Positions 1,795 through 24,087 of a stretch of DNA of 64,000 nt are shown one piece after another. The notes below the pieces were generated by a model, which ran no database searches, was not told where the DNA came from, and was given only the letters and a program-made list of their open reading frames with translations. Each line of letters opens with the position of its first letter. Positions within the stretch are counted from its first letter, which is position 1. This DNA comes from Oikopleura dioica (lineage: Eukaryota; Animalia; Chordata). The translations under genes were made by a program, and so were the position numbers. The DNA lies in assembly GCA_907165135.1 (NCBI GenBank), contig OU015569.1, positions 5,828,001-5,892,000 of the forward strand, given 5' to 3'.

Positions 1795-3219
1795 TTAGTC
1801 CGAGTCCTCTGCGAGGACAGTCTGGCGACTTTGGAATGAGTATTGAGAAGCTGTATCTTCCATTTCTGAATCCATCATTCGGCCTCCGACATTTCGTTTA
1901 ATGCCGTAAAGAGAAGCGTCATTTGTTGAATCGTCGCTAAAAACGTAAATATAAAACAGTGATGTTTTAACTACTACCTGTCGGAGCTATCGCCGAAAAG
2001 CAAGTCCGCTCCACTACGGCTATTATTTAGCGACGCGAATTGACTAGAACTGGGCTGAAAAGAAGGCTGTTCAGGCTGATATTGACGTCGATTATAGGAT
2101 GACAAGTCGTATTGATCACGGGTCTCGGTTAGCCTTGATGCGTTCAGAATATCGGCCTGCGTTAGCATGAGAGGACTCTGAAGAATCCGTAAGTTGTCTA
2201 GACAAAAGTTTAAGCATTTTTACTCTTCTTCCGCTCCCACTCGCAGGGATTATTTCAGACTTAGTAGAGTCAAGGAAGGAATCGTCGCTGTGAACACGAG
2301 TTATATTGATTGTCTTTGATATGTCCGAGCTCAGTGTGGCTGTGACAATCGAAGAGATGAAATTGTCCGACTCAACTTTGAAAACCAAGGGACAACCTTG
2401 ACCCTCTTCGAAGACCTTAATATTTTACATTCTCACAGAAATGTAAGCATAAAGGAATTGTTACTTTTACTTCAGCATCTTCCATCAAATCTTCCCATAG
2501 TTTTACAGCTGCTCGAAGCTCTTTCAATGAAAACGTCAGATGGTCACTCATCGGCTGGAAGATCTCCAACTCTTCGGATGTTATCGCGACCTGGGACTTG
2601 ACACTCGATTTGACAGTGTTTTCATCGTACGATTTGAGATGCAGTTTTCCATCATCCATGTACATAGTCGCTTCCAGAATCCCGCGAGGAAAGGTAGAGA
2701 GTTCTCCATCGATTACTGACAGTGGGCAGACCATAAATGGAACTCTTTCCTCGAGGTCGAAAGTAGAAGCGAGGTTGTCCGGGTCATACACTTCGAAGTC
2801 GTAGTGTTTCGTCCAATGTTTCGTGCCGATGAATTTGTATGAAAAATGTTCCGCCGAGAAGTCGATTTCGATTTTATCAAGGAATTTCGAGATGTTCATA
2901 GCTGAAACTTTGATCAAGTAGCGCAGCGGGAGACTGATCTTGACATCATCGCAATACACGGATGTTTGTGATTGCGAAGTGTTGTAACTTTCGCTTATGT
3001 CGAAGAACTCGGGGGTAAGAATCATTTGCATACAAACTGATCGGGAGATATTTGACGTTTGAAGCTCAAATGATTGTTACGAAATTACATTGGAACTCAC
3101 TCGATTACCTTTAATCCTTGGACGTCATACGGCTCGATTTGAACGTGAGGACCAATTTTGACGAGGGTTTTTAGCGTTTTTACGAACTCCGTAATATTAT
3201 AATCAGGGACGATCCACAT
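1795..3219 (-). CDS. RAD9: RAD9 subunit of the 9-1-1 checkpoint clamp
   Basis: N-terminus FVKTLKTLVKIGPHVQIEP / SNISRSVCMQMILTPEFF, internal LTFSLKELRA, and C-terminal VLAEDSD* matching the RAD9 tail (PVLAEDSEGEG). Confidence 0.8.
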
Positions 3220-13021: not shown

Positions 13022-16000
13022 TCACCAGTAAATGCACCATCCGGTATAATGCTGACATAAGTTTTCAATATTACGCGCTTCGTAGATAAGCCTGTCAACC
13101 TGAATGAAACACAATAAAAAAGAGAGTTTAGGTCAAGGTCTATTACCTGATCTTTCACCGAGAGAGTATTCGTATTTTCGTCTACTTCGTTGAAGTCTTT
13201 TCCCTCTAACTTTGCGGTTACCCTTTGAATCTTTACTTTCGCGTCATCGGCTTCCACCGATATTTGACCATGCTTTTGGACCCGGCGATGCTGACTTTCA
13301 GCGACGACGGGGTCTATTTTATTTGTTGATAATTAGTTAACGAAATTTTAATACCGTTAATGAAGGCTTCCAGAACAGCCAGAATGGACTCTTTATTTGA
13401 CCTGCACATGTCCATGCTCTCGAGGCAGATTTTCTTAAATGTTCCGTCGACGCCCGTTACTTCCATCGCATTAACCAGCATTCTTGTCAGTCGGAATGGC
13501 ACTTTTTCCGGCACATGTTCTCGCTTTTAGCAAGTTAGAATTGTAGGTAAAATGCTCACTTTTACCTTCATGGCGTTTTCAAAAGAATCGCCGAAATCAA
13601 TATGCGCAATCTTTCCAGAAGTAGTGATGATCAGAATGTTGCTCACGTGTCGATCGCCTAATCCTAGTATGTATCCGACCATACTCATCATGGCCAGGGA
13701 ACAGACAAAGTTCGTCCTGCGCTCAAACCAAATGTCAGCAGACGCCGACTGGAGCCATAGAATTCGCGCTAGATCGTACCCTCGGTCTTCAGTGACCTTT
13801 TGAACGTATTGGAACATTTCAACTTTTTGGAGAATTGAACAGTTTTGAATCGCAGAATCTAAAACTGCCTTTAAACCATCTGACCAAGTAATTTTTTGTA
13901 CCTTGAGGTAATCTTTCTTTTTCATGCTCCTTTTCTGGATGAGGTGTAACGTTTAATCGTTTTTGACGGATCCACTTGAGCAATTCATTGATTGTCTCTA
14001 GAGAAACAATCATTAAACCTAATCAACGTTGATTTCGAACCAGAGTTGTCTATCCATCGGACGAGACCACTTTGAAGACCGTTCTCATTAGTCATAGGGA
14101 TAATTGAGTATTTTATAACTTCGATGTCTTTCTTTCTCAAATTATTGTTCATCTTGATCAAACTATTCATAAGGTCGAATAACTGCATCACGCGCTCATC
14201 GAGTCGCAAGTCCTCCTTCCCTAAAAAGGACATGTTAAATACAGGGTAAAAAGTGGACATTAACCTTTGAGCAAGAATTGGTGACGCTGGCCGTCAGAGC
14301 CATTGATAAATATTTTCCTAGGTTTCTGCTTCGATTTGAGAATTTCAATTTCAGAAGCGACAGAATGGATTCTGACGAGATCCATTCCTGGCTGATATGT
14401 TCCCGGTATTGCCAGCTCCATATCTTTGACTTCCAGTAGTTTTGTTGAGACCTAAAAAACATAAGTTTTACATTTCAAGGCAGAAAGTAACCTTTTTCAA
14501 ATCCAACTTCGTCATGCCGCTCGCTTTATCCTTTATCTTTCGTTTAATTTCCTGATACTTCCTCATTAGATCTTCAAGATCATTTTCTGTTTCATCTCCA
14601 TTCAAAAGTCGTCTTTGAAAGATATTAAGTAAAATGGGCGTCTCAAAATAAAAGAAACCTGAGATGACGATCTGCACTGGTGATGTTCTCGTGGAAAGTG
14701 CTTTTGAACTCCACTTCAGAAAGATTTCTAGTTTGCTGCGTATTTAGAACCATCTCATGAAGACCGCGCATTCGTCGCTTTATGTATTCAATCTTTTGAC
14801 GCCTGTCGAGCTCCTGGTTGTTCTGTTGACAATAGAACTTTTGTAAGATGTCTAAAAATCTTATTACTGCATCAAAGAGTTCGACAAACCTTCCAAAGCT
14901 TCATTCCACTGATCAATCCACAACATCGCTACCGAAACAAGCTCCGTTGAAATCATTTCAGCTTCTTTAACGAGATTCCTAAAATTTCGAGTAAGAGTTT
15001 GTGATTTCGCGGTCAAGTACTTCGAATGATCACGAATGCGGTTAATGATACTTTTGGCGAGATCGCTTTGACGTTCGTTTTCTTGGGTCGCATTTTTCTG
15101 GGCATAAATGAGCGACCAAAGTATCCCTTGAGCATGCTTTTCTCCAATATGCGAGAGAATTTCTGAAGGTTGGCTAATTAAATCATTTTTATTTGAACTT
15201 TTACCTGGAATGTTATCAACTTTCTTCATATCCATGATGGCGATTAGCTGTGGAACAACTTTTAGCCAACGCTCTGGATCGCAAGAGAGCGGTTCGTTTC
15301 GAATAGTCTCTAATAACCGTCCTTCACTCGCGTGCATAAATTCAGACGTCTCTGCGTCTTCAAGGTCCTTGTTGATTTCAGCCATGATATTCAATATACG
15401 AAGCATATCCTGTAGCACTGATTTTTGTGAGAGCTTCACAGACTCGTAGAAATATTTGAGAGCATCCACGGAGAAGTTCGCGATTTCTTTGTAAATCGGT
15501 GATCGAATCTGCTTGAATAGTTCCGCTGCTTTTTCCTGATCGTCTTGACTTGAATTTTCCCGTTGGAGTTGAAGCTGTCTAACTGTAAGCGCGTCCCCTT
15601 CTCGAATGCGACGGACAGAATCCAGAGCGAAATTGGCATACGAATGAACTGCTTTATATCGTCTTTTGATGAACTCACGGCTTTGCGCATCTTTTTTATT
15701 GAGGGCGTCGATGGCTGTCATGTACAGGTCTTTGATCTCACTCACTCTCTTCGTCAGAATCGGAATTTGATTCGGCTGAGGAACAGTCGTTCTCCTCATT
15801 TCTGCCTGCCTACAGTAAGTCATCGCTAATACTATTCTTTCGTCGTCGGACATACGTTCCCGGTCGCGCAAATCCTTCAATCTGTTTTTCAGAGGTTTCA
15901 AATCGTCACACAACCGCGTGATAATTTGAATGCCCTTGTCTTCTGATTTAGGTCGCACTTCCAAATCAGGTATAGCAACATGCTTAACGTATTTGTAAAG

Positions 16001-19000
16001 CGCTCTAATTTTCAACGGGGAAATCTTCAGCGATACTTGTCGTCCTTGTATATTCTCAACAAGCCCCGGGAAACTCAGCATTTCAACATAATTCCAACTA
16101 TCGATGTTAGGCAATATCTTCTTGATTGTCTGGCGTGCGATCTCTGTTCGTCCAGATTTGGCAGCAAGTGACATGAATTTAAGCATTGATCTTTTTCGGG
16201 TGATTACACTGTGAATACTCTATGATCACAAGACTGTTATTTGTTTATTGAATATCTGTAACATATGGGTAGATGCCCTCCATGACTTCGGGAAGTCTGT
16301 CTTGACTATATAGATAATAAACCCAGTAGATGAAACTAAATAAAACGAAAGAAGAGGGAAAAATAATTCGGGAGAGATTATCAACAGAGCGAGCGAACTC
16401 TTTGTAAAATGTTGCTCCCAACGCCAGCTCTTTTTCATTAAGGGTTGTGTTCTTTGGCACAGCAACTGGAGTACTGACATCCATCATAGGTATGCTTCTG
16501 AAAACACTATGGTCACCATTATATTGACTTCAATTGATAGAACCTTCTACTAAGCGATGCGTAGTTAGAAAGCGGAAGAAGTTGCGACTGTGAAATTGAC
16601 TGAGGCATATCTTGGCCGAATCCCATGAAGGAAGAACCATACGGGCCCGAAACAGGTAAAGTTCTTCGTTCAATCCGCTTCTTTTGGAGAATTTCGAGAA
16701 AGCCAGTTTTCTGACGTGAGATGAAATTGACCGCAGCATATTCTAATAGAGCCGCAAAAACGAAAAGCATGCAGAAAGACATCCAAATGTCTATAGCTTT
16801 TATATACGACACCTTCGGCAATGAACTGGATGCTCCTGACGTCTGTGTCGTAATTGTAAGGACAGTAGTGATGCCTAGAGCTGTGCGCGCAGGGGCTGCC
16901 TCAATATTGATCCAAAAGGAAACCCAGCTTAGGACAACGATGAGCAGCGATGGAACATATAACTACAATTATCAAGTAAATGTTATAAATAAAGAAATTT
17001 ACTTGAATAAGATAGTAACCCATTTCACGTTTCAAAACAAGAATTCCTTTTAAGCAAGTGAAAGTACCAGTATTGTAAACTTTGTCACAGTTGGCTTAAA
17101 TTGGGTCAAATGAAAGAATCATATAGAAAATAATATCAAGTATCGACCCATGACAATATGATAGCCTTTGATAGAAAACTGGGGCAAAGCGAGAGTCTTG
17201 GATAGCTGGATAGCATCAGTATCTTGCCACACAAAAATCAAATCACGCTTGTCGTAACCGAACGATTCCACTAAAAATAATCGAGAAATCGCTTAGGAAT
17301 GATATTACGTTCTATATTGCATTGCTGCAGATCCATCGGGAAGATCAAAAGATCCATGTAGCAAGCCAGTGTTAGTGTTATTCTTATTGAAACGTAAATG
17401 TCACCATTTTTGTAGACCCTGACTAGCTTTTTATCGATTTTACGAAAAGGTTGCAATTTTTGAAAGTGATTTAGTTTTGAGTTTAAATCTCTTCCTTGTT
17501 ATCTTGAGTGACTTTATGAAAGTTGGCTTTCTTCTCGTTGGCGAAAAACAAATCAGGAAGCCAGAAGCGTTGGAGAATAGAGGGATGCACGACAAGGGAG
17601 TCATCATCAAAAAGCCCATCGTAACGTAAGCGAGGATCATTCCACCGCATACGGAGAAAAACATTCAAGCGATAGTCCATCGTTGTTTCGGCGATCGAGT
17701 CCATTGAATTGACAAAAATATTAATCGAAATGTTTGAAGGCCGCTGTTTATCGTTCGGGCGTATTTTATTATCATAACCCTGTAGAATCCGCTCAAGTAG
17801 AAGCGTCGGATTTTTAGAGGGCGGTATGGTCGGCTGTCTATCGTTATAGCCTGAATTCTTAACAGCGCTACGGATTTGGGCGCAAATGAAGGCCTACCGA
17901 AAACGATCCTCGATTGCTTTCGTAATCATATTCTCCAAAGGAACGGCCACGAGTATTTTCTTGACTACCATAGTAATCAAAATTATTTCTCCCTTGATTT
18001 GCAGTCTGTATATTTCTGTCATACTCTGCGGATGAGCTATATGAATCGACATTTCCGTAGGAATCGCCAGACGGGCGATAGCCATTGCCTTGCGAACCTT
18101 GAAAAGGACCCCGATTGCCGTTTCCGTAGTCTTGAAAGTTACTCTCTCCATAACGATTTTGATTTCCGTAGTCTCCAGTGTTTCCATATCCTCCTGTGTT
18201 GAAGTTGCTCATTCCAGTATTTGAGCTTTGCTCATTATACGAATTATCTATCGAAAATTAGCGAATGTATAAACCCGGCCTCACCATATTTGTTTCTTTG
18301 CTGATTAGTGTTCGACCATTTGTAGACAGCTAATGCCTCCGAAAAATATAAAAGCAAAAATCTCATTTTCTCGTTTTCACAAGTACAGTCTAAATCTGAA
18401 GCGCAGAAAAAAATAACTGATTTAATTAATTAGCGCGATTAATCACCCGTTCCTGATATTAAAGTGCTCTTCCGTGTCATCCCTGGGGATAACACCGTTG
18501 TTTTGTTGTTTCACTAATGAGCGGAGAAGAAGAATTTTCTGCCATTCTTCGATGACCAGTTGAACTCCATCTACACGACTGCCATCATCAGCTGTAGTTC
18601 CACATAGTCGACTTTCCCACATTTCTTGAATTGCGATCTGCCTTTGTCGATTCGCCGTCCGATGAACGATAACTTCTTCGAGCTCTGAGCAGAGTTGCGC
18701 GTTGAAAACAGTTACGTAAACTCTTGAGTAGTTTTTGTCTTGCATTGTGAGGGATGTTTCTAGCTCTTTACGAGCCTCGATTGTCCACTTTTTGCGTCTT
18801 CGTACTTAGAGTTCTGCACTGAATGGACAGCTCTATAGAAAGCGCCGTCGAAAGAATTAACGGGGATAATTTGGTGAAGACGCTGAAACTCGTCCCAGTT
18901 TCCCAAATGCCAAGCAGCTGTTGTTCCAAGTTTTACAGCATCAATTTTCTGATCCTCAATCTCTTCATCAAACTCGTATACCTTCGTACATAGCTCGTCC

Positions 19001-22000
19001 CACTCTCCAAGAGCCTCTAAGCAGCGCATATAACCAAGTTTGTCATACGGATTGTCATTCCCATCGGCATAAAGTGTCTTTGCTTCCTCCCATCGATTAA
19101 GCTTCTCGAACCACTCTGCACTGACCGTAATTTCATTCCCCTTTGCGAATTCAAGAACTCCCTCAGCAGCTTCTTGCTCACCTAGCTTCTGGAAACTCTT
19201 TATGAGACTTTCGGCGATTTTGCGTTCCTTTTCTTTATTATCTTTTTCGCTAGTTTTGTAGAGAAATTCCATCTCTCGATAATGCAAAGCCTTTGCATAT
19301 GCATCTGTTCTTTCTGCACAATCCGCGAGCTTGCCGATTCCGTTGAGACCACCGAAAGCCTTAAGGGATCCTCCTGGTTGGTCAAGTCTCTCTTTGTCGA
19401 TATCAGACAATTCGAGGAAATGAGCAAGATCCAAGAAAAATGACAGGATACCTCTTGGAGGATCGGTGTTCTTGCCATCGATGATTTTCAGTAGACCTTT
19501 TGTGATATGATCTCGATAAGGTTTAATAGGATCTTCTGGAATTCGCGTTGCTTCGGAACCATCAATTTGAAGCTCGCGAACAGGCTTAGGCTCTGCCCAC
19601 ATAGCGTAAAATGAGCAATTGAAGATGATCAAATTTATAGGAGTGTTATAAATCCGATCTATTCCTCGAAGACCGCGGATAACATCAGATTTGCTATGGC
19701 TCAAAAACATTTGCTGATTCGTACTTGCAAATCTTTGAAATCTTCAGGGGTTTGGCAGTCAACTTCAAACTCTTCTTTGAGCCAATTGTAATGGGCAGTG
19801 TCATGCTCGTCCTCACCCTCCTTAATCATCGATTGATCGAGAGAAAAGTCATTCTTCAGCGCTTGATCCTCGAAGATCATTTCAGGATCTTCAGATGGCT
19901 TCCATAGACTTCGAGTTCTCATTTGGAAGTAATCATCGTATTCGTCTTCCCATAGATTGAAGTGGCGCATTCCGCTACGCATCGACCTGAGACATTTTAT
20001 CGCAGTCTCTCGAAGGACATAGTCGGTTGTCAATTTAGAAGGATGATCGCCATGATTTTTTATAATGGTATGCTTGTTTGCGGCGACTTCGTACTCCAAG
20101 GCGATAAGAATCGCTTCCGAGAGAATCATAAAGTAATCAGGCATTGCAGTACGTACAATGCGTGCCTCCAGAACGACGAGTATTTCACCTCTGAGTTGAT
20201 CCGAGGACGTAGCGCTCTGCAGCATCGTTGCTAGCGGACGTAGAAGGACAGAATAATGGGCTTCGATGTAGCCGAATTTTCCTATTGCTCGGACTAAATA
20301 AATCGTCGCTTCTTCGTCCTGCGGATCGGTAGATGACTTAAGCTTCTCGAAAAGCTCGAGGATATACCGGACAGCCCATCCCATGTAATCCTTGAACTCG
20401 TATTGAAGATTGTAAGCCGCCTGATAGATAAGCTGAGCGAGTTTCTTCCGCAGAGGTGCGTGGCTTATATCTTTCTGTGTATCCATTGTTTGTCGTATAT
20501 CGTTCATAAAGGGCAAAACGCGTCGACGCATTTTCTGCAGAAGCTTTTCGAACAGACCGAGAATGTTTGATTTGATGTCTTTCTTTGCTGAGGGATCTTG
20601 TGCGATGCGATGTAACTCTGGCATTACTTTTCCTAAGTGAGGGAGGATATTTGTTCCAGCCCGTTGTATAAGCAGATCAAGAGAATGAAGAGGAGCAGTA
20701 ACATCGCCTCCATGAGAGAGTTTGGCTTTTATTAACTCAACAGCAACCCTGATGATGAATTTCTCGTCAGGGCATCTGCATTCGTTGACAAGCATCTCAT
20801 TTATACTCGTGAATCCATCTTGCTTGTCATTCTTACTGTTGGAACGGCGCTTCTTAGTTATTTCCTTATACTGGTACGGATCTAGTGCTCCCAGCCGACC
20901 AATCATTCGCAGGGCCTCCTCATTAATTTCATGCTGCATTGTTTTCTTATCTGCAGTTACCAAGGCTAACATGTCATCCATAAGCTTTCGGTGCTTGAAA
21001 TAGGGACTAATAACGTAGTTATGATGCTCGATGAGCGACGAGAGACAACGAAGTGCGGATACTTTCACAGTTGGCTCAGTTGTTTCAACCAACAGTCGGT
21101 AAATGAGCGAAAAGAAACGATTCAGGGTGCCTTTTTCTAGTCGTGGACCGTTGACAGCAGATATTGCGGATAGACAGTCAATAAGAGTGCATGTCATTCG
21201 AGGAGGGTAGCTTTGGACGTATTCGTAAGAGAGTAGTGGTTCAATTTGACGAATGGTGGGGTCAACGAAGAGAGATAACTGGGCCTGGTTTGCGTGACGG
21301 AAGAGAACCTAAGACATTTGTAAGACAATTTTAAAACCAAGAACCCAAAAGGGGAACATGGGGGTAAGATCGCCAGGGCTTGCTTTAGAGCGGCTTTCCA
21401 CGGTCATTGGGGCATGAGTGACCTCACGGCCAGGATAATCCGCTCACCGAAGTAAGGCCTTCAATAAAAGAAAAATATTTTTAGATACTTCTATTGAACC
21501 CCTTATGGTTTCTAGTGGATATCACTAGAATGCTTTTTACCTCCAAAAGCCTCGCAGAAGCTTGATCGGGCATCTGCAATTGTGTCCACAGATCATTTAT
21601 CATCATTCTAATGTGTGGCATCGTCTCTGCGGCATTCATCGCATTCAGTCGTCCAATGATTTCCATCACGGCTTCTTGCACCTCCAGTCTGTCTGTGAAA
21701 TTCTCTTCTTTTATCGGATACGGCTGGTGAATCGCGTTCATGATCCGCTCCAAGTTATGTTGATGAATGAGATATGCATCGAACTCGGGCTTCAAGGAGC
21801 GGTAAATTGCTAGCTTTAGCTGAGTCGATTGGCTTTCCTGCCTGTATGGAATGATCGTATCAGCAATTTGTAACAGTTTTCGGATAATATTAGAAATCGT
21901 TGTTTCGCCAACAAGATTGGGTCCACAGGTGGAAGAATGGATGATGAAGAGACGCAAAACCCGAGTTACTGCTTTAGCGGCAGCGATTTTCACCTGAATT

Positions 22001-24087
22001 TTTTCCTTCGGGTTGAAATATTCCTTCCAGCGATAGATGAGTTTTTTATACCGTGAGAAATCCGTAAATTCGAAACACTCTAGCGCTTTCAAAGAAGCAA
22101 TTCGCTTTCTGACGGAAACTCGGCCAAAGTCGAAATCCTCGCCATTTTTGAATGGTATCAAAACAGAAAGACTGGATAAGCAGGAGTGATCGTCCGAATA
22201 GCCATTCATAATTTGACTAGGAAGGCGTTCATTGAAGAGGTTTTTTAGCAGGACCTGCTCCATTCCATGTGAGACCTGGTCACGGGATATCTTCGAGTTC
22301 AAGGACTGAACGCATCGAATCCACGAGTCCTTGATCTCAATAAGACCGAAGGCTACGATCATGTTCAGAAATTCCTTATTCTGTGGCTTGAACCAGAGCT
22401 TCTTGTGGAGATCCGTAAGGCTTATCGAAATCAGTTCAATGCACTGGAATAATGTTGGATCACAATCCACGCTCCCCCTATTCATTTGAAAGTGAATAAA
22501 AGCTTCTTTTAGCACACTCTTGAGTTTGGGAATAACTTTAGTGTCGATCTGCTCTTCGAGAACTGTCGTCGGCCTTGTACTTGGATCAGCCAATTCCGAG
22601 TCTGACTCGCATATTAAATGAATGATCATTCCCATGCTCAGCAATGCTGTTCCCTGATTTCGTCGGACTGCTGTTTTTTGATTACCAGCAGGCGCGATCT
22701 CTTGGAGACAGTACTCAATAGTTTTGACGAAGAAGGGCTCAAACTTCTTTGGATTGAAGGCACAAAGTTTAGGCAACAGTGGAAGGAGATACGGGTGAAT
22801 ATTGATCGAGTTTTTCATCGAACGTTGGTTAAGCACGAGCGTTGAAAGGGTTTGTATGTGCTCGTCGAGAAGTCTTTCGGCAGTGGAGGAGTTAGGTTGG
22901 AGGTTGGTGAAGCGCGCGCCTCCCATGGGGTTTTCTAGCGCTTCTTCTTCTAAATCATACTTGAAAACCGCGTCGAAGAACTTCTCTGTTTTATTCTTCT
23001 GGGCACATGGATTCCATGTCTGGGCGATTCTTTTAGTCGGTTATTTACAAATAGCCTACGAAAAGAAAAATATTTTTAGTATGAATTAACCATGCCTGAG
23101 TTTTTTGAGGCAACTTTTCAATGAGTTAGTATAGTTGTTTTTAGCAGCGGAAATATCTACAAGCAGGTAGCAACATAGAAGCGGCCCTATTCGATCGCTC
23201 TCCGTATTTTTTAGTCCTTCGATGATGCTTTTGACGAGATCTTTAGGCCACGCCCGGACATCGCTGAGAGCAGTCTCACGTGAAGCTACAAGATTGAGAA
23301 TTGCTTTGAGTGCGCTAAAGGCAGCGACTCGCATTTCATTGTGCTCAGAGTTGACGGACTCGCAAACGATTTTTATGAGCTTGGCGACAATTTTATCTGT
23401 TTTTCGACTGTTTCGACGCATTGCCGAGCGAAAGTGATTCCTGTAGAAATCGATGGGGTGCTTTGAGGCCATGTGGAAGTAGAATAAGCAAGCATGGTAG
23501 CGTTTCACTTGGTCCTCGTGGAATAAGAGTTCGTCGAATTTGGACGTAGCAGGCCAAATCGCCATGCCCGACATGCAGGTAGAATATACAAGCATCATGA
23601 GCTCCGAAATCAAGATATCTTTCCTTTGAAAAGTTCTATTCTTGTTGTTGTCGTGAGCTTCCATGAGCAGTGAGGACAGACGGTTGGAAATAATAATGTG
23701 CTCTTGGAATATCTCGTGTGAGATCTTGAAGCAAATGTACGCACAGATAGCACCCGCGAATTTTGAGTCTGCACTTCCCCCAGAATTAACGATTTTCTTC
23801 AAATTAGTGGCCGAGAAGTCGGATCCTTGCCGTGCGTGGCGGTTGTCTACCAAGAGAATGAGGATTTCCTCCTGCAACTTTTCCCTGAATTCTCGCCATT
23901 CTTTCGAGGTGCGCACATTCTCCTCAAAAGTCTTCTTTATGTGCAGGTAGAATTTGCGGGCGCAAACGACGAGATCGTCGGAGTAATGGTCGCTTTGCCA
24001 GTTCTTCTTTATTTGCTGCGTCAGCTCGATCGCATATTGCAGGGCAGCGACGTTCCAGCTGTTCGACTGCAGTTCCACCGCCGACAT
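13022..24087 (-). CDS. MTOR: Serine/threonine kinase TOR, highly divergent (HEAT-FAT-FRB-kinase-FATC)
   Basis: [15 protein letters not shown] and ELEEVI...[13 protein letters not shown]; [14 protein letters not shown]; kinase [46 protein letters not shown]; [18 protein letters not shown]. Confidence 0.9.
16245..18366 (-). CDS. GLRA: Glycine receptor alpha-like Cys-loop chloride channel subunit, nested within the TOR locus
   Basis: Signal peptide, [24 protein letters not shown], Cys-loop [20 protein letters not shown], loop [13 protein letters not shown], anion-type [25 protein letters not shown], and an M4 helix. Confidence 0.92.

Follow-up and report, generated by a model that had tools for sequence, protein, structure and literature searches.

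We analysed a window of 64,000 nucleotides from the chordate Oikopleura dioica (GenBank assembly GCA_907165135.1, contig OU015569.1, positions 5,828,001 to 5,892,000 of the forward strand; all coordinates below are those of the window), which carries a gene for the TOR kinase whose FRB domain has lost the groove residues that contact rapamycin and FKBP12 in human mTOR. The gene was delimited by long open exons, by single-exon Pfam matches and by the mapping of L001, an intron-less 5.4-kb contig of the Joint Genome Institute (JGI) that belongs to a sister lineage, encodes the protein P0002 and was treated as a transcript. It comprises HEAT/mTOR_dom, FAT, FRB, PI3/PI4-kinase and FATC domains, and its introns are very short (38-46 nucleotides, nt) apart from one of 2.26 kb. 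The features outside the FRB domain are the following:

13022-24087 (approximate limits), minus strand: TOR kinase gene
13022-13102, minus strand: end of FATC, closing with GWCIYW and followed by a stop codon
13587-13658, minus strand: block with the catalytic loop GDRHVSN (13658-13638) and the start of the activation loop, HIDFGD (13604-13587)
14263-14451, minus strand: exon in which the kinase N-lobe starts, with FLLKG at 14277-14263 and the catalytic Lys codon at 14268-14266
14979-15020, minus strand: intron of 42 nt (GT..AG, in frame, stop-free) just upstream of FRB
15163-15204, minus strand: intron of 42 nt (GT..AG, in frame, stop-free) in the C-terminal part of FAT
2.26-kb intron of the TOR gene: contains a nested Cys-loop channel gene

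Every defining feature of the TOR family (PIKK) that was tested is present in this gene. The N-terminal HEAT region was recognised by mTOR_dom (PF11865; 61.7 bits against a cut-off of 27.6) on the exon 19704-21197, and FAT (PF02259) gave 27.6 and 28.7 bits on two exons upstream of the kinase (cut-off 24.2). PI3_PI4_kinase scored 91 bits on a single window exon, PF00454 scored 211 bits on P0002, and FATC (PF02260), which ends in Trp, reached 44.5 bits on the same protein. FRB is placed between FAT and the kinase N-lobe and was recognised as a four-helix bundle by Pfam, AlphaFold2 and Foldseek through P0002. The catalytic Lys, DRH and DFG are all intact, as the initial annotation of this DNA had stated, and so is FATC. 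The TOR of the window is strongly diverged, because its single-exon Pfam scores are low (about 28 bits for FAT and 14 bits for FRB on exon B, see below).

The exon structure was read against contigs of the sister lineage. L001 maps to window positions 21014-18453 and 16192-13019 with about 77% nucleotide identity and about 97% protein identity; its junction at 2563/2564 joins window position 18453 straight to 16192, i.e., it is spliced across the 2.26-kb intron with the channel gene. A metagenome scan yielded a second intron-less contig, L003, which shares 97% identity with L001 and has a single open frame of 1326 codons; it also yielded three genomic contigs of the L001 lineage (L004, L005 and L006), which are interrupted at the matching sites by introns of about 37-56 nt. 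P0002 itself is an uninterrupted natural product of 649 residues, found by a word-index search with the exon upstream of the FRB junction; it reads exactly as the spliced window model, with one residue different within FRB, and was used as a proxy for the joined FRB of the window in Pfam, HMMER and folding. Both 42-nt introns are skipped in P0002, L001 and L003, and the alignment with the human protein is gapped at their positions; scanning for open reading frames reads through these stop-free introns, each of which then adds 14 spurious residues. The frame of L001 shifts from 1 to 2 near nt 3060 in that contig only, the window and L003 being open there, so that a contig error is probable; we rejected a biological frame split, since L003 has a single open frame.

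The FRB domain is encoded by three exons, which are separated by two short introns and followed by a third:

14531-14944, minus strand: FRB domain, corresponding to P0002 residues 138-247
14852-14889, minus strand: 38-nt phase-1 GT-AG intron, immediately 5' of the codons of positions 2033-2035
14659-14851, minus strand: FRB exon B, with the end of helix 1, an insertion of 11-12 residues and helices 2-3
14844-14849, minus strand: codons ATC (Ile, human A2034) and TTA (Leu, 14846-14844, human S2035)
14613-14658, minus strand: 46-nt GT-AG intron inside FRB, missing in the more distant relative L002
14492-14612, minus strand: FRB exon C, with helix 4
14566-14564, 14563-14561 and 14557-14555, minus strand: codons of exon C for Met (W2101), Arg (D2102) and Tyr (Y2104)
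14554-14552, 14545-14543 and 14542-14540, minus strand: codons of exon C for Gln (Y2105), Lys (F2108) and Arg (R2109)
14452-14491, minus strand: 40-nt GT-AG intron after FRB

Positions 2033-2035 are read across the first of these introns, which the initial annotation had proposed. It has to be spliced out, because it contains an in-frame TAA TAA. The codons 5' of it are CAG TGG AAT GAA GCT TTG GAA G, the intron reads gtttg...tttag, and its removal joins GAA G to AC ATC TTA, giving E-D-I-L, followed by CAA AAG TTC TAT TGT. At the same point both L001 and L003 have GAT between ...ALE and IL..., while the genomic contig L004 has a G, an intron of 39 nt from GT to AG, and then AT; this comparison of cDNA with genome is proof of the junction in the sister lineage. 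Neither the site nor the phase of the intron differs in L004 (39 nt) or in L002 (117 nt), and the introns 14658-14613 and 14491-14452 are likewise skipped in the transcript contigs.

Residues of FRB are given in human mTOR numbering, and alignments were made with phmmer/HMMER against PDB. With the upstream exon as query, the phmmer alignment stops exactly at E2032 of human mTOR, facing LWHEMWHEGLE; therefore the split codon GAC corresponds to position 2033, ATC (Ile) to A2034 and TTA (Leu) to S2035. Exon B or exon C alone, both short and divergent, found no mTOR match in PDB but only chance coiled-coil matches. P0002, on the other hand, matched human mTOR over FRB and N-lobe with E = 2e-34 (HMMER) and aligned without gaps to human 'egleeasrlyfg' and 'dltqawdlyyhvfrri', its 11-12 extra residues (alignment gaps) being located between helices 1 and 3, and the spacing from helix 4 to the conserved KVSTKLL anchor is the same as in human. 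Six groove residues are thereby replaced: A2034 by Ile, S2035 by Leu, W2101 by Met, D2102 by Arg, Y2105 by Gln and F2108 by Lys. A canonical FRB has a small residue (Ser, Ala or Thr) at 2035 next to Ala2034, the aromatic triad W2101/Y2105/F2108 on helix 4 and the aromatic pair Tyr2038/Phe2039 on helix 1; the window and P0002 have Ile-Leu at 2034/2035, the window has Met, Gln and Lys in place of the triad, and the helix 1 pair is kept in the window as Phe-Tyr. The gap-free alignment that the initial annotation had given for the end of helix 1, with the Leu codon 14844-14846 at Ser2035, and its claim that the last helix replaces Trp2101, Tyr2105 and Phe2108 were both confirmed in this way.

A wrong splice or an assembly error, with the true mRNA carrying Ser at position 2035, would explain the unusual residues as an artefact. 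We enumerated all frame-keeping GT/GC..AG pairs around the junction, and a single pair, the non-canonical GC donor 14870 with the acceptor 14803, would give Ser at the 2035-equivalent and bring the length nearer to that of human. We rejected this splice, which the initial annotation had named in general terms as a refuting outcome, because it would delete 17 codons whose protein is identical across lineages and which are included in both transcript contigs (L001 and L003): over the first 22 codons of exon B, 12-14 of the 66 nt differ from the sister lineage without a single amino-acid change. The sequence of the 38-nt intron, in contrast, is not conserved between the window and L004. Moreover, helix 4, which holds three of the four losses at 2035, 2101, 2105 and 2108, sits in a single exon in all lineages, and L002, which lacks the 46-nt intron, carries helices 2-4 together on one exon; the pocket loss in L002 is therefore independent of splicing. 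An assembly error is disfavoured by DNA runs of several studies, which contain 87-100% of the sampled words of the window. An artefact thus seems hardly credible.

The derived FRB is predicted to keep its fold. The Pfam model FRB_dom (PF08771) scored 32.9-38.7 bits on P0002 (cut-off 24.7), as against 14 bits on the window's exon B alone. AlphaFold2 modelled P0002:133-263 from an alignment of 49 rows as four helices (2-30, 40-59, 67-91 and 97-128), with a mean predicted local distance difference test score (pLDDT) of 79.9 and a predicted template modelling (TM) score (pTM) of 0.73. In a Foldseek search against PDB the best 41 matches were all FRB structures of mTOR/TOR, and the isolated-FRB chains superposed with a target-normalised TM score of 0.81-0.85 and a root-mean-square deviation of 2.0-2.9 A at 17-20% identity, suggesting that the four-helix bundle is retained. 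The domain is not decaying either. Nei-Gojobori counts between the window and L001 gave at most 2 amino-acid differences over 110 FRB codons, with a proportion of nonsynonymous differences (pN) of 0.016 and a proportion of synonymous differences (pS) of about 0.85, which is saturated (kinase domain: pN 0.038, pS 0.70); FRB is therefore under strong purifying selection. A pseudogene or relaxed decay is ruled out by a pN/pS of about 0.02 and by the intact motifs.

Two further larvacean-type lineages from ENA show that the loss is old. L002 is a more distant relative (about 50% identical), and L007/P0123 represents a further distant lineage. At positions 2035/2101/2105/2108 the window has L/M/Q/K, L002 has Q/I/R/H and L007/P0123 has N/V/M/K; positions 2034-2035 are Val-Gln in L002 and Val-Asn in L007, and 2038-2039 are Trp-Thr in L002. 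Arg2102, Tyr2104 and Ile2111 are common to the window, L002 and L007. Among these lineages FRB (2033-2112) is only 28-38% identical, as compared with 79% for the first half of helix 1 and 66-83% for the post-FRB linker and the N-lobe. The channel gene (Neur_chan_memb) is also found upstream of the FAT exon in L002, i.e., synteny is kept. The groove was therefore lost early, probably before the sampled larvacean-type lineages diverged, and has drifted between genera since, while fold and flanks were kept. The two FRB exons of L007 are separated by an intron (about 625-1050) of about 430 nt, far longer than the 46 nt of the window; this L007 intron is filled with a short tandem repeat that is visible as recurring ...ISIF/NLNF... 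in all frames.

We built two panels to see how rare such a groove is among eukaryotes. In the first, comprising 119 eukaryotic TOR fragments, S2035 is retained in 115, W2101 in 117, Y2105 in 110 and F2108 in 111, and none loses more than two of these four pocket residues; because they are kept nearly universally, the pattern of the window is not due to chance. Within this panel P0002 ranks last both in FRB identity to vertebrate mTOR, at 24% where the median is 58%, and in the ratio of FRB to kinase identity. The second panel came from an exhaustive search of 1.84 billion protein representatives without a length filter, which gave 137 matches complete at the four positions: 90 have no change, 35 one, nine two, two three and one four. 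Across both panels S2035 is kept in 95-98% and W2101 in 82-96% of TORs, and all four residues are lost in one of about 256 other eukaryotic TORs (0/119 and 1/137), a partial tor1 of the chytrid Nowakowskiella sp. (P0216) with F/L/R/L at 2035/2101/2105/2108. Other natural changes are found in TOR paralogues of the bdelloid rotifers Adineta ricciae (P0191; L/Y/F/Y at the same positions) and Rotaria sordida (P0061; Leu at 2035) and in Caenorhabditis (P0036; Cys at 2105); W2101 is Leu and F2108 is Arg in P0264, a fragment of 158 residues. Pocket erosion thus appears to be present elsewhere in nature but rare, and no other chordate case was found among the roughly 256 sequences of the two panels.

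The bdelloid sequences also bear on the possibility that a second, canonical TOR elsewhere in the genome is the rapalog-sensitive kinase and the window gene a specialised paralogue, since P0191 and P0061 are precisely TOR paralogues with a changed residue 2035. The initial annotation had advised searching for such a copy, and none was found by word-index and exhaustive protein searches, which did not cover the whole genome. Above 50% identity the exhaustive search returned only short larvacean-type fragments of this same TOR type (P0124, P0144 and P0123), the remaining matches over the whole query lying at 42% or below, and no closer TOR-like protein of canonical type was present among the 1.84 billion representatives. 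Moreover, strong purifying selection acts on the window TOR, which has its full length and whose sister-lineage counterparts (L001, L003) are expressed, and the nested channel gene keeps its place even in the distant L002. On these features and on the protein sequences searched, we regard a specialised paralogue as very unlikely.

Compared with known systems, the larvacean FRB resembles that of human mTOR (PDB 1FAP, 1AUE, 5WBH) in its position between FAT and kinase, in the four-helix bundle, and in the conserved N-terminal half of helix 1 (LW..W.E.LE) and post-FRB linker; it differs in being only 17-24% identical, in the insertion of 11-12 residues after helix 1 and in the six replaced groove residues. 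The laboratory and clinical rapamycin-resistant mutants S2035I, A2034V and F2108L concern the same positions and are of the same kind, in that they bring larger side chains to 2034/2035 and remove the aromatic residue from 2108, but they are single, selected changes in a canonical FRB, whereas the larvacean changes are multiple, natural and fixed in a strongly diverged domain. The yeast alleles TOR1-1 and TOR2-1 are rapamycin-resistant TOR mutants as well. The nearest published precedent is GTOR of Giardia lamblia (PMC10418948), whose FRB is 28-29% identical, has four helices, and carries Met at W2101 and Lys at D2102 and Y2105; unlike the larvacean protein it keeps Ser at 2035 and Tyr at 2108, and it belongs to a protist, not an animal. 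It was also the only published, partial precedent for a natural FRB loss that we found in the literature, and no paper describing the present change came up when full texts were searched for Oikopleura together with rapamycin or FRB. Arabidopsis and land plants (PMC1903354) are naturally insensitive to rapamycin as organisms although their TOR pathway is active; their FRB can still bind, since they become sensitive when given yeast FKBP12, and it is their FKBP12 that is defective, whereas in larvaceans FRB itself is changed. The other eroded TORs (P0216, P0191, P0061 and P0036) carry natural substitutions at the same positions, but most of the pocket is kept in all except the chytrid fragment, the rotifer proteins sit beside other copies, and none is from a chordate.

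S2035, F2039, W2101, Y2105 and F2108 contact the 80s loop of FKBP12, and T2098, W2101, D2102 and Y2105 contact the ligand (PMC11796051), in agreement with the pocket role that the initial annotation had assigned to the three aromatics. Its further statement was that bulky substitutions of S2035 abolish FKBP12-rapamycin binding; mammalian cells with Ser2035 changed to Ile are highly resistant, and the affinity for FKBP-rapamycin is reduced by this change (PMC2360702). A2034V and F2108L each give resistance too, the latter having arisen in a patient on everolimus (PMC5118441). This FRB surface also helps to bind S6K, PRAS40 and phosphatidic acid (PMC11796051; titles of PDB 5wbh and 5wbu). Since several changes of the resistance-conferring kind occur at once in the window, the high-affinity ternary complex of FKBP12, rapamycin and FRB should not form. 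We consider it likely that the window encodes the single functional TOR of this larvacean tunicate, in which the fold of FRB was kept, the rapamycin/FKBP12 groove was remodelled and the canonical, nanomolar action of rapalogs is resisted. The groove is built from the end of helix 1 together with helix 4 and is, in canonical TORs, where rapamycin and the 80s loop of FKBP12 bind; its remodelling presumably arose before the sampled larvacean-type lineages split and is now held by purifying selection in the O. dioica complex. FKBP12-rapamycin would then be unable to form a high-affinity complex with this FRB, and TORC1 would resist nanomolar rapalogs and stay sensitive to ATP-site inhibitors.

Several observations weigh against this view. 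In O. dioica the rapalog CCI-779 lowers p-4EBP1 and p-RPS6 and arrests endocycles (Subramaniam et al. 2014; PMC3973624), and this could reflect a residual FRB-dependent action, or poor uptake that makes high doses necessary. Tyr2038/Phe2039 are conservatively swapped for Phe-Tyr in the window, and Y2104 and R2109 are retained. Of the RNA reads from four runs under the same species label, only 2-6 per run could be placed, at 90-95% likeness and without joints, and they belong to another cryptic lineage; the check by cDNA that the initial annotation had called for is thus answered by the sister-lineage transcripts L001 and L003, in which the junction is seen, and not by reads of the own lineage.

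The drug data raise in particular the possibility that binding of FKBP12-rapamycin survived the remodelling of FRB, be it with lower affinity or through an FKBP12 that co-evolved, and that the animal responds to rapalogs by the canonical mechanism, the high dose being a matter of uptake. The retained fold, the F/Y pair at 2038/2039 and the Tyr at 2104 agree with it, as does the finding that 7.5 uM CCI-779 lowered p-4EBP1/p-RPS6 and mimicked starvation (PMC3973624). However, three or more positions show a type of change that suffices by itself for resistance in mammalian cells (Ile, larger than Val, for A2034; Leu for S2035; Lys for F2108), and W2101 and Y2105, which contact drug and FKBP12 alike, are lost as well; besides, the groove residues vary among larvacean lineages, which is a poor fit to a conserved ligand site. 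Only micromolar CCI-779 near toxicity was used (5-20 uM tried, 7.5 uM picked with <20% mortality; PMC3973624), and in mammalian cells micromolar temsirolimus has effects that are FK506-insensitive and partly mTOR-independent, with an unfolded protein response and a global translation block (PMC5605117). We thus think it unlikely that canonical binding persists, while the published drug data neither prove nor disprove canonical sensitivity in O. dioica. The formula of the initial annotation, a 'naturally rapamycin-insensitive but active chordate TOR', holds as far as a conserved, active-looking TOR without the contact residues is concerned; the insensitivity is what we infer, strongly and on good grounds, from the changed residues.

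With the groove remodelled, the auxiliary docking site for S6K1/PRAS40, to judge from the role of the groove in mammals, was probably relaxed or rewired in larvaceans; relaxation is favoured because the groove positions differ between larvacean lineages. It is conceivable, though we would put it forward only tentatively, that larvacean TORC1 abandoned the FRB groove altogether as a site for drug and for S6K/PRAS40 docking, chooses its substrates through other contacts such as Raptor/TOS, and that the published phenotypes under 7.5 uM CCI-779 are FKBP12-independent or off-target. Larvaceans would then be a natural FRB-groove-null animal, in which FRB-dependent could be separated from FRB-independent functions of TORC1.

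TOR was named after rapamycin and has largely been studied by means of it, and few surfaces of the kinase are as conserved as the FRB groove; the gene described here is a natural variant of this well-known kinase, certain in its sequence structure and predicted in its pharmacology, and the only TOR that we detected in this chordate laboratory model lacks the whole groove. In Oikopleura it would be unsafe to take rapalogs for specific TOR inhibitors, which bears on how the CCI-779 work on growth arrest and lifespan (PMC3973624) is read, and ATP-site inhibitors are to be favoured, such as Torin 1, which at 1 uM abolishes p-4E-BP1 in O. dioica (PMC6883708). The natural loss of the groove may also serve as an evolutionary experiment on how dispensable the site for S6K1, PRAS40 and phosphatidic acid is. 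In addition, rapamycin should fail to induce dimerisation through the larvacean FRB, which could provide a natural negative-control FRB scaffold.

Over the whole C-terminal half, the comparison of the window with L001 gave a pS of about 0.76, with synonymous sites saturated and proteins nearly identical, as would be expected if a single species label covered cryptic lineages of great depth. The ENA fragment P0124 (85 amino acids), an O. dioica-type exon B, reads LNNTQTRN instead of LNTQQTRN and keeps DILQKFYC, a difference that hints at yet another cryptic lineage.

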